Source: Antechinus flavipes (Eukaryota). From it: 64,000 bases of DNA. The translations under genes and the position numbers were made by a program. Shown piece by piece: positions 38,267-54,398 of the stretch. The notes beneath the pieces are model-generated. The model was given only the letters and a program-made list of their open reading frames with translations, ran no database searches and was not told the origin of the DNA. The stretch lies in assembly GCF_016432865.1 (NCBI RefSeq), contig NC_067403.1, positions 200,012,001 to 200,076,000 on the forward strand, read 5' to 3'. The first letter of the stretch is position 1. Every line of letters starts with the position of its first letter.

Positions 38267-41200
38267 AGAAAAAATCTGGCCTTGGCTCTGGGTTACTACG
38301 GTCGCTATTGTCAGCCTTTATCACGACTCAAGATTACTCACTGGGTCTGCTCAGAGGATCCCGGGTGCCTGATGGACTTCTATTGCTCGGTTTATTGATT
38401 TATTCGTACACCGTTCTCCTTCCATTCATTGTCCTTCCACTCCAGCCTCTATATCCCATGCTCCCACTCTCTGGGGTCTTTCCGTCCCAGAATAACTGCA
38501 TCACTGGACCCCTCCCCCGTTTATTCCTATTGTACTTGGAAGGCAGGGTCAGGATTCTGCATGGTTCCTCCTGCCACTCCCTTTTAAGGGTCCTAAACAT
38601 CTCTATGAAGCTGGTTTCCTTACTCCTGAACCCGTGCTTCTGAGATGTATCGATTTTCTCAACTTTTTGGAAAACCGAGTAGTCTTCGATAGTGTTCTTC
38701 CTTATCCCAGTCGCCTCCTCGGGTCTGCGTGGTCTATTCGCCCTCGTCTTTCTCTTAACATAGTCCCAATCTGACTATACCGCTGTCTCCCCAGTCCCTC
38801 ATTCTTCTAGGTAGAGAGATCCCTCTGGCGCCAGACTCCGCCTCTCCCACCGAGCTCCCGCCTTCTGAACTCTAGGGCTCCCCAGCCCCTATAAACTTTC
38901 ACCTATTCTGTCCCCTCCCCTCATTTTTAAGGACTCCCAATAACACACGTTTCCTTTCCCGGGGATTCGTTCTAATCAGATGCTAGTCTATATCCCAGCC
39001 TCTGCCCGGAGGCTTCTCCCAGCGATGGCCGTAGCCCGGTCAGCCGGGTCTCCTCTGCCTCGCTTAGACATCCGGCAGTTTGTAGCCGCTTCCCCACCTC
39101 CACCCCCCGCCCCCGGTCAGTGTGAATAAAGAGGATCCGACGCGGCTTTTCGCTTTTTCCCTCCTGCGAGCGAGCGGAAAGGGTGGGAGCAGGCCACAGA
39201 CGCTGGCGGCTCGTGGGCGTTGAGCAACCCCTGGTACGTACGGATTGCAGGCCTGACATCGGGGAGGGCTGCGTCCCCCATTACCTCTCCCCCCTCAGCT
39301 TTTAAAAGCTGACTCCCCAAATTGCTCTTCTCCCTCACCCGCAAGTGAGATCGGCCCTTCGTTTCTAAATTGAAACCACTAAGCCCCAGGGCACCCCTCG
39401 GCATTCCTTTCTACAAATACCTCCCCTGCCCCCTCCTCATTCCAAGAGTTTATTAATGATGACCTTGACCCGGATCCAACCCAGAGCGGCACGTGGGATG
39501 CGTAGAAACGGAGACGAGAGAACTAAGGGCAAAACCACAGTCCGGGAGGCTGCAGTGACAGCACATCTCCTCGCAGACGCGCGCTAGTCTCTGCGTCGCT
39601 AACACCGCTACCGCGGAGACAATGAAGGGCTTGGGGGACACTGTAACGTCTTACGGCGCAACGGTAGCTGCGCGGCGATACACAGTAACCAGCCTCGCGC
39701 CCGGAGCTAGGCCTTACGGGAGTTCCCCAGCGGAGATACAGTCACACGCGCCGTTGGGACACAGTAACCCGGCTTGCGCACGCCCTTGTAACGCCCATGA
39801 AGCAGCACATACACCACCCGCGATACAGGCAGCCGCACGCTCGCAGAGAATAGAGCGGGAACACGTTAACGAGAGCAGCACAAAGGCATTCCCTTAGCGA
39901 CAACTCCCAGGCTGCTCCCCACCCCTCCATTGACGCTTGTGGATGTGGGTGGGGTGGGGGCTAGAGTTGGGAAGACTTTCCCCACCCCCTACACTGTGGA
40001 GTGGCTGTCCCCCTCCCCGTCCCCCGGTAATTTCCCGGGTGACCGGGCCGCCGCTGGCTGCTGACATCCCCGGCTGAATTTAATTCCTTTAACTTGTGAT
40101 TAATTACGCGCCCCCGCCCTCACCCCTCCCTCGGGCCTGTCTGCACATCAAACGCGGAGGGGGGAGGGGCTGCGGGGAGCTGCTGGACCAGAGAGAAAGG
40201 AAAGGGGAATTCTGTGGTCATTTACCCAGTTCTAGGCCAGGTAAGATTTCCCTCAATCATCCCCTCACATTTATATTGTCTCCAAAAAAATCACCCACCC
40301 GCCCTTCTCCCAAGCCCAACCCAGTCTCTCTGGACCCAATAAAATGTTAATCTGCACTCCCTTCTGCTCTGGCTGGAGAAATTTTGCTGAGTTCTTAATC
40401 CTGTAAAAGGAGGGTTTTGGGGCAAGTGTGTGGGTTCTAGCCCCAGGGAACACAATATTATCTGAGTTGAGGGACAAAGATACATATGGAAGAAAGTGAA
40501 TCAAGAGGTCCAAGTCAAATCCTAACTTGGCTAATTTACTGTGTGATGTCTCCAAATCACTTCACTTTTAGGCCTCTTTCCTTCTTTCTAAAATGATGGA
40601 GTTCATATCCAAGGTTCCTTCTAGTTATGATATTCACCCATAAATTCATAGTTCATAAAGGGCAGGTTCCAGGCCTGGGGAAAGAAATCCATTCTAGCCT
40701 CAGTGGCCAAGGAATATTTCCTTAAAGGCGTAAATTTAAGTTGGTCTATAATTGATAGGTTGAGAGGGCTCCCATAAGGTGGCAAGAAGGGAGGGTTTCT
40801 AAAGAAGGGAAAACTGCCCTATCAAGGCCAAAATCTGCAGAGAATAAGTTTAGCTTATTGGAAGAGTGAGCAACGTTTGGGCCTTAAATGCTGTGGGCTA
40901 AGTGAAGGACAAGCTTCAGTAGCATCGATGGGGAAACCAGGAAAGGAATATAATTAGGTACTGGGTGTAGGAGAAAAACTTGAAGGAAGGTTACCTGCAA
41001 GGAGGTAACCAAGAGGTATTAAATTAAACTGGTAGAGTCTGGGCGGAGAAGAGACACTGGAAGGGAAGAAAGGACAGGATTTGTTGACTGGGAAGTCAGG
41101 AAGAGGGAGGAGTCAAGGGGGTTTCTAAGCCCAGATAATTAAGGGTTTCATGGCACCATGGGGGGTCAGGAAGGGGGGAAATTAATTTCAGGAGTAAGAG

Positions 41201-42158
41201 GGTTGGCTTTGGGCAATTACTTCCAAGAAGTCCCATCCAGCTCTCTTCCTTTGTTCATGGGAATAAGACTATATAGCCCCCACTCCCAGCCCCACCCCCC
41301 AGTTCAGACATCTCCAAGCTAATTCCTGTAGGAAGTCTTCCCTGATATTGACAGGCACCTCAGGGAAAAGGGAGAAGTTGGATGTATTTGATAGAAAAAG
41401 GCCAGAAGATGTTTGAGGCTGAAGAACATTTTATTAAGCTCAGTTCCTGGACTTGGAATGCAAGGGGGTCCAGCACACAAAGCTCTGCCTCATCTGCCAG
41501 TAACCAAATCTGGCCAGTACAGTACCTTCATTAGACACCAGGCATCGGGCTGGAGGTGAGCCCTGACCCAGAGCCTTAGGACACACAGGCCCCTAGTAAC
41601 AGCAATCATCTTCAGGGTCCTAAATGGGGGCCCATATGAAGCTCACACACGCTGCACTGGCCTTGAAACTTTGCTAGAGGCTCCTATGAGGAAGGAAGGA
41701 TGTTAAAGGGAAGGGAGACCAAAGCTGGAAAAGTGGTGAGAAAATATCAGGAAGAAAGCAGATACTGAGAGGGAAGAGCGTAGTATAGTTGCTGAAAGGG
41801 AGGAGAAAATTTTTTTGTTCATTTGTGTAAATGTGAGTAGGGGGAGTCTAAGAAAATCAGAGGGAGTTGAGGACTAAAAAGCTCTAGTAATTTTAGAGAA
41901 GAAAGTTTCCTCACCAGGTTTTTGGCAATTGAAGGTGTTGGACTGAAGGTAATAGAACTGGAACCGGGACCGGCAGGATAAACGGTCGGGGACCAAATCT
42001 GGTGGAGTACAAGCAAGCAATGAAGGGTTATAAGGGTGCAGCTTTGTTACCTTCCCACCACACCCCAGAAACTCATGGTCAGAGACCACCCCGACATCCC
42101 GGGCATGACCCCTCCCCAAGAGAGGTAGCAGAAAGAAGGGCAGAGATCCGAGGGAACA

Positions 42159-42307
42159 CTTTTTTTTTGTTGTTGAGGCAATTGGGGTTAAGTGACTTGC
42201 CCAGGGTCACACAGCTAGAAGTGTCAAGTATCTGAGGCCAGATTTGAACTCAGGTCCTTCTGACTTCAGGGCTGGTGCTCTAGCCAATGTACTACCTTGC
42301 TGCCCCA
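42159..42307 (-). mobile_element. Marsupial CORE-SINE (WSINE1/MAR1-like)
   Basis: T-tail followed by TGAGGCAATTGGGGTTAAGTGACTTGCCCAGGGTCACACAGCTAG...GATTTGAACTCAGGTCC...GCTGCCCC (B-box-like GAACTC, reversed tRNA-derived head). Confidence 0.8.
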
Positions 42308-42639
42308 GAACACCCAGTTCTTCACAAGGTTTATGCAAATGGCAGCTCAGGTACATTTAAAGATCTCATGTTCAGATGGGGAGCTTAAAGACTCTTTCAC
42401 TTACTGTCATATTAAGTGACTTAACATTTCTGAGGAAATCTCATCTGCCCATTGTAGTACATTAGGAAAAAGTCTGTGAGCTTGAAGACCATATAGAAAT
42501 GAGAGCATGTCTTTTAATTCACAATGATTTCCAGCAAAATTCTAGGATCAATTATGAATGAAAGAAAATGGTTTAGACTAGGATCGAAATAGAAGATGAC
42601 ACTTAGAATAGGAAGGAAGGATTACTGAGAGGCAGTTTA

Positions 42640-43990
42640 AGTTCATCAAGAGCTCATGCCAGACTAACCTTATTTCCTTTCAGTGGCAGGATTACTGGAC
42701 TGAGTAGATCAGGGGAATACCCGATACCGTACACCTAAGCAAAGTATTTAACAGTCTCATGAAAGTGTGCAGGATGACAAGGTTAAGGGTACTGGGAGCT
42801 GAAGGACTAGACCCAAAGAGTGTCAACAACTTGAATGAAAGCACAGAGGGGCAAACGGGATTTCAGACTTCATGAATCAAAGGACAGTTAACACAGTGGA
42901 TAACAGAACCAAGATATACAAAACTTGGCTCATGTGAAAAAAGTTTAGGATTTAATGCAACCTTCATATAAAGTAGAAGTATGATGTGACTGTCAATATA
43001 TTAACACAGGTACTGTTGGAATCTTTAGAAACTGCTAACTCATTAGAGTTGATGTTTTGAGCCAGAACCTGAAACAAGGTACTAAGTAGAATTAATTGCT
43101 TGTGTTTACACTTTTACTCATTGAAGTTCACAAGTATGGGAGATTCACAAAGTAAACTTTGTAACTTTGTGAATTCATACCTCCCTTGAAGCTCTTAGGG
43201 CCAGAGAGCATTCTGGGAAGAAACCCATAATCCCTCTCTCTTGTATCCCACAATTCTTCTTTCTCATATATAAGATTCAGACAGAGGCTCTCAGACAGAA
43301 TTCAGCCAAATTACATGGAGAGGAGAGCATCAAGTCAGAAGAAGCCACAAGTCAGAGTTGAGCTAGAGCCAGGAGAGAATTACTTCGGAAGGCAAGAGAG
43401 ACAGATCCATATTTGTGCTGGCTGGAGGCTGAAGAAAGCAGAGGCAGAGGCTGAAGGACAAACCTTTGGATTTGGAGACATTCGAGGAAGCTCTTGAAAC
43501 CAAGCAGAGAGATAGGCCTCTAAGAATCTAGCTATCTGGGCCCAAGGAAAGAGACAAGACTTGAAAGGAGAAATAAACATTTGTATTTTTACCAGCTGGC
43601 TATATTTGAGGTAATTATTGATCTGAACTGATACTAAGGCTGCCCCCAGAAAACCTCCCCGAGAAACCTACCTTCTCTCGCAGAGAGAACTATTATATTT
43701 AAAAGAAGAAAATCACCACAGGTACAGTATACAGTTTAAGGAAAATAATCAACCTTAGTAAGAGCATATCTGAAATAACTGTTCAGTTCTATGTGCCACA
43801 CTTAAAGGACACTGAAAAAACTGGAATAGGTCTAGAGTGGAGTGAGAGGACTGACTAGATGCTATGCCATTTAAGTAATAGTTGAAGGACGTAGGAAGAA
43901 TTAGCCTAGAGAAAACATGGGGGACAAAAGGCTTGAATATATCATATATTTTGTGGGGAGAGCCCCAAAAGAAAGTGATACTCAGTTATA
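42640..43990 (+). mobile_element. L3/CR1 LINE remnant, split by the solo LTR at 43014-43720
   Basis: CR1-type phrases AGACTAACCTTATTTCCTT...GATCAGGGGAAT (about 42661-42720) and CATATCTGAAATAACTGTTCAGTTCT...TTAGCCTAGAGAA (about 43765-43912) flank the LTR and read as one element when it is removed. Recognised by eye. Confidence 0.6.
43014..43720 (+). mobile_element. Solo LTR of an endogenous retrovirus (707 bp)
   Basis: Starts TG (TGTTGG) and ends CA (CACCACA), with a perfect 5-bp target-site duplication GGTAC at 43009-43013 and 43721-43725. TATA box TATATAAG at 43267-43274 and AATAAA at 43572-43577, in U3-R-U5 order. Confidence 0.85.
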
Positions 43991-44420
43991 AGGAAAGAGA
44001 CTTTGATAACTCCTCTCCCTCTGACCTCTTTCATCCCCTTTCCCTTTCAGCACAGGCAAAACCTGTTAGGAATAATCAGGACAACAGGTTTGGGAGAAAG
44101 CTGACAACTTGAGTTAATGTTTTCCTGGATGGTAGATGGGAAAAAAATTATAGGAGGGAATTTTCCAAGTAATGTTTCAAGGCTGGGAGGGGTGGGCAAG
44201 AGAGTGTTCTTGAGGGATACCATGCCTCTAGAGAAGGATGGACTAGATGCTAACTTTAAAGAGACTCCCCCTCTGCCACTTAGGGCCATGTAACTGGGGT
44301 TGTCACGTTTTCACTTCTGGCCTGCTTCCTAATCTGTAAATAAGAAGGTTGGATCTAAGATCCTCTAATTTGGAACTTTTAGTTCTAGATACATGATTAC
44401 TCCAAGTAAAAAGGACTACA

Positions 44421-44651
44421 GAGGGACAATTAGAGAGTGCCAGGCCTGGAGTCAGGGAGACCTGAATTCAAATCTGGCCTCAGATGCTCTCTACCTCTGT
44501 AATCCTAGACAAGTCACTTCACCTTGTGTGCCTCCGTTTCCTCATCTGTACAATGAGCTGGAGAAGGAAATGCAAACCCCTCTAGTATCTTTGCCAAGAA
44601 AATCTCAGATGGGTCATAAAGAGCTAGACAGGACTGAAAACAACTCAACAA
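44421..44651 (+). mobile_element. MAR1-type marsupial SINE
   Basis: GGAGTCAGGGAGACCTGAATTCAAATCTGGCCTCAG...CAAGTCACTT...TTTCCTCATCTGT (CORE), then GCTGGAGAAGGAAATGCAAACC...CTTTGCCAAGAAAA...GACTGAAAACAACTCAACAAC (RTE-derived tail). Confidence 0.75.
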
Positions 44652-45247
44652 CAAAAAAGAAAGAGCCACAAATAGGGCCCCAAGCTACCTTGGGCATACT
44701 CCACCCCCACACTGAGAGCCTCAGATACTCTGAGGAAAACAGAGGATCATTTCTTAAGTCGGAACAGCCTGATCCTTCTTCCAGGAAGGGAGGGAGCAAG
44801 CACTAGCACCATAGGGGTGCCAACAGTTGCAGAATGAAGCATCTGACTCAAAGAAGCTAATGACCACCTCCAAACAAAAGAACAGGGAGAGAAAGTGAAG
44901 TCTGACATGAGCTTAGAATTTACCCTAAGCCAGCCTTTCATGACTAATAGCACCTCGGACAGATAGCCTGGACTACTGTGGTGCTACTCAGAACCTAGCA
45001 ACTGTGTCTGTTAATGTGAGGTCCGAGATGGCCAGTTACATGTGCTAAAGTTTATGAGCAGGGCTGAGTATGGCTATCCCCTCTCTTGGGAGAAAACCAA
45101 TGAGTCCACTCCCATTGATGTACAGAGAACTACCATGTCCCTCCTATCTTGAGAAATGGGGAGTAGATATTACAGGCCTGCCCAAAGGGATGGACAGAGG
45201 TAGCCTCTTTGGTGGACAGGCAGATACACACAGAGACAAGCTGGCCC

Positions 45248-54398
<9,151 letters not shown>

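Follow-up and report, generated by a model that had tools for sequence, protein, structure and literature searches.

A stop codon inside a 5′ splice site and the predicted 3′ exons of TTC31 in Antechinus flavipes

Where does the TTC31 protein end in the marsupial Antechinus flavipes? We examined this question in a window of 64,000 nucleotides (the whole stretch of DNA that was analysed; contig NC_067403.1, positions 200,012,001 to 200,076,000), whose minus strand carries TTC31, a gene that adjoins LBX2 in mammals (PMC2446394). An earlier note on this DNA had observed that the last apparent codons of TTC31 overlap a splice donor, and had joined this donor through a 41-nt exon and an 84-nt exon to a terminal exon, reading the chain (41410-45252) as an unexplained extension of TTC31 or as the 3′ end of a small new gene. 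Our comparison with other marsupials indicates that the stretch very probably comprises the final intron of TTC31 and its two final coding exons, all on the minus strand. It also shows that three of the four features in the earlier note are not novel, the donor, the 84-nt exon and the terminal exon being already part of the RefSeq and Ensembl models of six marsupials. The apparent TTC31 stop in the window would thus not terminate the main protein, and the main value of the result lies in correct annotation of the gene. To our knowledge, TTC31 has no established function.

The assignment begins with the window's TPR exon (46337-46194), which, compared with a representative protein library, retrieved a 570-residue protein with 100% identity over the exon. 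This is the X2 isoform of TTC31 from Sarcophilus harrisii (XP_023361929.2, hereafter P0001), identical to UniProt entry A0A7N4V2X1. Used as a tblastn query, P0001 placed TTC31 exons on the minus strand of the window from 54398 to 41914, with its residues 539-568 matching 42003-41914 at 93% identity (28 of 30 residues). The matching frame of the 84-nt exon, AG/A TTT GGT CCC ... ACC TG/ (/ denotes an exon boundary), lies one base off that of the earlier note. The features to which we refer below are as follows.

45525-45252, minus strand: last large coding exon of TTC31 (tblastn match of P0001 residues 448-541 to 45528-45252; identity to koala 87%, versus about 63% in the next intron)

45359/45358, minus strand: site of a 1-nt deletion in the last large exon (CTCTCTGG in Sminthopsis, Sarcophilus and koala, CTCTTGG here, in a four-species alignment; the tblastn match is split)

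45251-45248, minus strand: 5′ splice site, GT at 45251-45250, overlapping an in-frame TGA (CAG/GTGAGG identical in Sminthopsis, Sarcophilus and koala)

44729-44689, minus strand: 41-nt candidate exon, not supported and most likely intron (absent from isoforms, evolving at the intron rate)

42734-42692, minus strand: coding part of a predicted alternative terminal exon, tail (R)CTVSGIPLIYSVQ followed by a stop (Sarcophilus X6 tail identical; ATTAAA downstream at 42518-42513)

41998-41915, minus strand: predicted penultimate TTC31 coding exon, 84 nt, phase 2 in and out, (R)FGPRPFILPVPVPVLLPSVQHLQLPKT(W) (match to P0001, conservation, pN/pS)

41683-41410 (lower end approximate), minus strand: predicted terminal TTC31 exon, G plus AGC CTC TAG (W-S-L-stop, TAG 41676-41674), with about 240 nt of 3′ untranslated region (UTR) (homologous coding sequence ends)

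41435-41430, minus strand: polyadenylation signal AATAAA of the predicted main TTC31 3′ end (kept with its flanks in all four marsupials)

The orthologous gene models agree with this arrangement. Across 34 annotated isoform sequences from seven marsupials (Sarcophilus, Sminthopsis, Vombatus, Phascolarctos, Petaurus, Trichosurus and Monodelphis), 27 have the tail FGP[R/Q]P[F/L][I/V]LPVPV..LP[S/A]V[Q/H]HLQLPKTW[S/N]L, and all orthologous proteins run on beyond ...SR. Carriers of the spliced tail come from the first six of these genera, with UniProt/Ensembl-derived entries among them; in Sarcophilus, Sminthopsis, wombat, koala, sugar glider and brushtail possum, the TTC31 proteins from RefSeq and Ensembl terminate in ...PPSR/FGPRPFILPVPV..LPSVQHLQLPKTW/SL-stop. 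In the genomic loci of Sminthopsis (L001), Sarcophilus (L002/L003, obtained via the longest isoform, P0152) and koala (L004), the annotated TTC31 coding sequence ends exactly at the TAG homologous to the one in the terminal exon. The gene order CCDC142-TTC31-LBX2 is the same in these three loci, with LBX2 about 3.2-3.8 kb past the end of the TTC31 coding sequence on the opposite strand. The earlier proposal that TTC31 continues into the 84-nt exon, and then into a terminal exon with a poly(A) signal near 41430, is thus borne out by both the orthologous models and the alignment, as is the proposal that the final TGA overlaps a donor in use.

The interval from the window aligns end to end with its orthologues, at about 90-92% identity to Sminthopsis and Sarcophilus and about 73-81% to koala; in the four-species alignment, the window is nearer to Sarcophilus than to Sminthopsis. 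Local alignments covered positions up to 42182 and from 42227 onwards, the whole window being used only as the subject in local BLAST and in local counts of motifs, and exons were searched singly and by reference, never joined into one spliced sequence. Identity to koala reaches 87.4% in the last large exon, 86.9% in the 84-nt exon, 85.7% in the coding part of the alternative terminal exon and 81.4% in the terminal exon, compared with 56-66% in introns and 61.0% in the 41-nt candidate. For the 84-nt exon, the difference from intron identity has a P of about 5e-6. This exon has no indels, and its AG/ and /GTRAGG boundaries are kept in Sminthopsis, Sarcophilus, koala and the window; likewise, the acceptor of the terminal exon is conserved and its W-S-L-stop is kept.

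The pattern of substitution within the 84-nt exon distinguishes among its reading frames. In pairwise Nei-Gojobori comparisons of the window with each species, which involve small counts, pN/pS is 0.13-0.26 in the annotated frame, 0.66 and 2.6 in the frame of the earlier note (undefined against Sarcophilus, where there is no synonymous change) and 0.9-2.1 in the third frame. Between the window and koala, the annotated frame makes 8 of the 11 differences in this exon synonymous (binomial P = 0.003), and the frame proposed earlier only 1 of 11. On these small counts, the comparison shows purifying selection on the 84-nt exon in the annotated frame only.

Together, these data point to the following route of expression. 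The last large exon would end in a 5′ splice site whose GT lies within an in-frame TGA (TCC AG/GTGA), and splicing would bypass this stop, an ordinary instance of a stop codon lying within a 5′ splice site. Removal of a 3.25-kb intron would join the donor at 45252 straight to 41998, with the first base of the 84-nt exon completing the codon AG/A. The exon would then read FGPRPFILPVPVPVLLPSVQHLQLPKT, and the codon TG/G followed by AGC CTC TAG in the terminal exon would bring the protein to its end at ...KTWSL, giving the predicted tail R-FGPRPFILPVPVPVLLPSVQHLQLPKTW-SL-stop with its TAG at 41676-41674; the mRNA would be polyadenylated after the AATAAA at 41435-41430. With the TGA spliced out, TTC31 would thus acquire a 30-residue tail rich in proline and valine, whose end, HLQLPKTW-S/N-L, is nearly invariant among the orthologues. 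Its hydrophobic-X-hydrophobic C-terminus (W-S/N-L) may serve as a short protein-binding motif. The same donor could alternatively be joined to the terminal exon at 42734, for a 13-residue tail CTVSGIPLIYSVQ, and retention of the intron would end TTC31 at ...PPSR.

The sequence elements on which the earlier note had built its chain are all present at the coordinates that it gave. On the minus strand, the donor CAG/GTGAGG lies at 45252/45251 with TGA 45250-45248 overlapping it (in the reading ...CCA TCC AG/GTGAGG); segments bounded by AG and GT are found at 44729-44689 (41 nt) and 41998-41915 (84 nt); and the acceptor CCTCATAG/ directly precedes 41683. The AATAAA at 41435-41430, in the earlier note the first canonical signal downstream of TTC31, is the sole minus-strand AATAAA below 45250 (ATTAAA occurs at 42956 and 42518). 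Scored with a simple position-weight matrix, the claimed splice sites reach 5.8-12.2 bits, comparable with the 4.4-10.1 of undisputed TTC31 sites in the window; the donor at 45252 scores 11.8, and the 41-nt segment combines an acceptor of 11.1 with a weak donor of 5.8. The observation that the 84-nt exon is rich in CpG holds for the window, where the exon contains four; koala has none of the four, and the dasyurid CpGs are mostly in CCG proline codons. Self-BLAST within the window found no second copy of any candidate exon, the only repeated pieces being those of short interspersed elements (42227-42286 and 44434-44629), and the exons are therefore not obviously derived from transposable elements.

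Compatibility of splice phases is in itself weak evidence; what decides is the comparison across marsupials. In first-order Markov shuffles of the interval, that is, composition-matched random sequences with donor and phase fixed, 42% contain one or more two-exon chains that stay open in the imposed frame, and a phase-compatible chain by itself does not exceed chance. Six such chains exist in the actual interval, a number reached by 8% of shuffles. A chain of this kind, assembled by hand, would arise in about 4 of 10 random sequences, and the present case cautions that one wrong mini-exon is enough to create a false cysteine motif.

That mini-exon is the 41-nt segment. Neither it, nor VSEALSVGVEYAQ, nor the cysteine-containing reading occurs in any of the 34 marsupial isoform sequences. 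In koala, the acceptor AG of the segment is missing and identity is at the intron level; in Sminthopsis, the pyrimidine tract has lost 8 nt and the segment itself carries a 2-nt insertion. The earlier note had named in advance missing splice sites or frame-breaking indels in orthologous marsupial DNA as grounds for rejection: the 84-nt and terminal exons are intact, and the damage falls on the 41-nt segment. Because this segment was included in the chain, the 84-nt exon was read in a false frame containing cysteines; without it, the exon is read one base over. The joined peptide with phases 2-1-1, ...DLVPDRLSCRSRFQFYY... ending at 41645-41643, is accordingly a wrong-frame product of a chain that includes an unconserved segment.

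The resemblance to Kunitz/BPTI domains (PF00014) dissolves with that frame. What the two share is only a pair of cysteines 16 residues apart, which exist here in an unselected, non-coding frame; the family is characterized by six cysteines forming three disulfides within about 55 residues, and four of the six are missing here. A Pfam scan of the 81-residue open reading frame, the exon peptide, and the open reading frames of the last exon and the 41-nt segment returned no family, Kunitz included, at E-values up to 10. A word search with the 81-residue and last-exon open reading frames, which is limited to proteins 0.55-1.75 times as long as the query, was also blank.

Might the full chain nonetheless represent a real minor isoform, with the 41-nt segment a cassette exon of the lineage of Sarcophilus and the window, translated in the cysteine-containing frame to the TGA at 41645-41643? 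The AG and GT of the segment are intact in both the window and Sarcophilus (97.6% identical there), its acceptor scores well, and the stop of such an isoform would fall within the last exon, so that nonsense-mediated decay (NMD) would spare the transcript. Against this, the segment is in none of the annotated isoforms, evolves at a neutral rate and is altered in both Sminthopsis (insertion and shortened pyrimidine tract) and koala (no acceptor); its donor is weak, the cysteine frame of the 84-nt exon has a pN/pS of 0.66-2.6, the Pfam and word searches were blank, and 42% of shuffles produce such a chain by chance. We therefore regard this isoform as very improbable. Still less credible is a separate small gene or long noncoding RNA between TTC31 and LBX2 that would hold the 84-nt and terminal exons. 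Its only basis is the remark in the earlier note that phase-1 exons might belong to another gene, whereas all orthologous models attach both exons to TTC31, the selected frame is continuous with TTC31, the annotation of four other loci has no gene between TTC31 and LBX2, and neither an upstream start, nor a promoter, nor a CpG island was found for such a gene, whose word search (81-residue open reading frame) was blank. We conclude that there is no separate gene between TTC31 and LBX2.

Returning to the assignment of the two exons to TTC31, several observations weigh against it. Its exon boundaries, frame and conservation rest on orthologous gene models and DNA alignment, and Gnomon models are only partly independent from one species to the next. 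By orthology, Antechinus flavipes would splice the gene in the same way. No TTC31 protein of this species was among the protein search results. RNA runs (4 on record as RNA and 11 guessed, with small shares of 0.05-0.09) contain about 9% of the words of 41300-45400, near the exonic share. Finally, the deletion at 45359/45358, if real, stops the upstream frame at TAG 45282-45280, before the donor, in which case the tail might go untranslated in Antechinus flavipes.

This last point leads to the alternative that TTC31 is decaying in Antechinus flavipes, its frame ending before the donor and its 3′ exons remaining untranslated within an NMD-prone or pseudogenic transcript. The single missing base relative to three other marsupials and the absence of a TTC31 protein of this species from the databases searched would both fit. 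The deletion may, however, be either real or an assembly error, single-base indels being a common error of assemblies, and a protein missing from a database is weak evidence. Furthermore, the exons and splice sites of the window are kept as well as in its relatives, and the 3′ exons are free of further damage. We consider decay of the gene unlikely, if far from negligible, and continue with the reading in which the two exons encode the C-terminus of TTC31.

Compared with other dasyurids (Sarcophilus, XP_023361929.2/A0A7N4V2X1; Sminthopsis crassicaudata, XP_074130353.1), the window has the same gene order, donor, and 84-nt and terminal exons, a tail 93% identical (FGPRPFILPVPVPV[L/P/S]LPSVQHLQLPKTWSL) and the same alternative tail CTVSGIPLIYSVQ. 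It differs at one tail residue, which is Leu in the window, Pro in Sarcophilus and Ser in Sminthopsis, and it alone has the 1-nt deletion in the preceding exon and an insertion of about 700 bp in the last intron. Diprotodonts (Vombatus XP_027692378.1, Phascolarctos XP_020861008.1, Petaurus XP_068927926.1 and Trichosurus XP_036619456.1) share the architecture and the HLQLPKTW[S/N]L block, differing by a few substitutions and, in Petaurus, by two residues inserted in frame into the PV repeat. The tail is thus common to Dasyuromorphia and Diprotodontia, which shows its conservation within Australidelphia. In Monodelphis, the model ends with ...FFLPTHPPVPSSHLPTIPHLTLRQL; this matches the tail weakly (E = 0.004 in a single comparison), which hints that the tail may be older than the split of the marsupial orders.

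Outside marsupials, TTC31 of Tamandua tetradactyla (XP_076990776.1) has the same neighbours and a CAG/GTGAGGG near the end of its last large exon (L005:12770-12790), but its model reads through the CAGGTGAGGG motif to a stop about 120 nt further on. No homologue of the 84-nt or terminal exon was detected by tblastn or blastn in this one locus, a comparison of low power, given that the last large exon itself hardly aligns. Separately, the Tamandua CAG/GTGAGGG is similar to the donor overlapping the stop in marsupials. One possibility, which we put forward tentatively and hold to be somewhat less probable than its negation, is that the 30-residue tail, with its PV repeat and HLQLPKTW-S/N-L, is an innovation of the marsupial lineage, in which DNA between TTC31 and LBX2 was exonised, replaced a read-through C-terminus and was kept under purifying selection as a C-terminal binding motif.

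Other TTC31 isoforms account for further features of the locus. An alternative tail of the form [C/Y]TVSG[I/T]PL... is present in 3 of the 34 isoform sequences, and CTVSGIPLIYSVQ is that of Sarcophilus isoform X6 (P0159); the alternative tail of the window is also close to those of koala X3 and Trichosurus X2. The acceptor TTGCTTAG/ before 42734 and the open reading frame that follows it are conserved. The tail of Sminthopsis isoform X4, which ends ...RS-stop, maps to an acceptor found only in Sminthopsis (L001:22395); at the homologous site, the window by eye has TTG in place of TAG. This tail is unrelated to the chain in the earlier note.

At the start of the last large exon, a tandem CAGCAG acceptor (45527-45522) matches pairs of Sarcophilus and Sminthopsis isoforms that are one Gln apart (...LSLQEHQ... 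versus ...LSLEHQ...). Further upstream, in the middle TTC31 exon (48870-49350), the part after a CAG/Gln-rich run matches Sarcophilus piecemeal and in differing frames.

Two segments of non-coding DNA near the 3′ end are much better kept than the rest. In the short intron between the last two predicted TTC31 exons (41710-41914), identity to koala is 82%, and in the 400 bp past the poly(A) site (41000-41409) it is 78%, versus 56-66% in other non-coding DNA. These segments possibly take part in control of splicing or of 3′-end formation, or belong to the distal 3′ UTR of LBX2 on the opposite strand.

The insertion of about 700 bp in the last TTC31 intron occupies 43011-43709. Sminthopsis, Sarcophilus and koala lack this insertion. 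It occurs as a single copy in the window, and the 9-bp direct repeat on either side of it, GTACCTGTG, resembles a target-site duplication.

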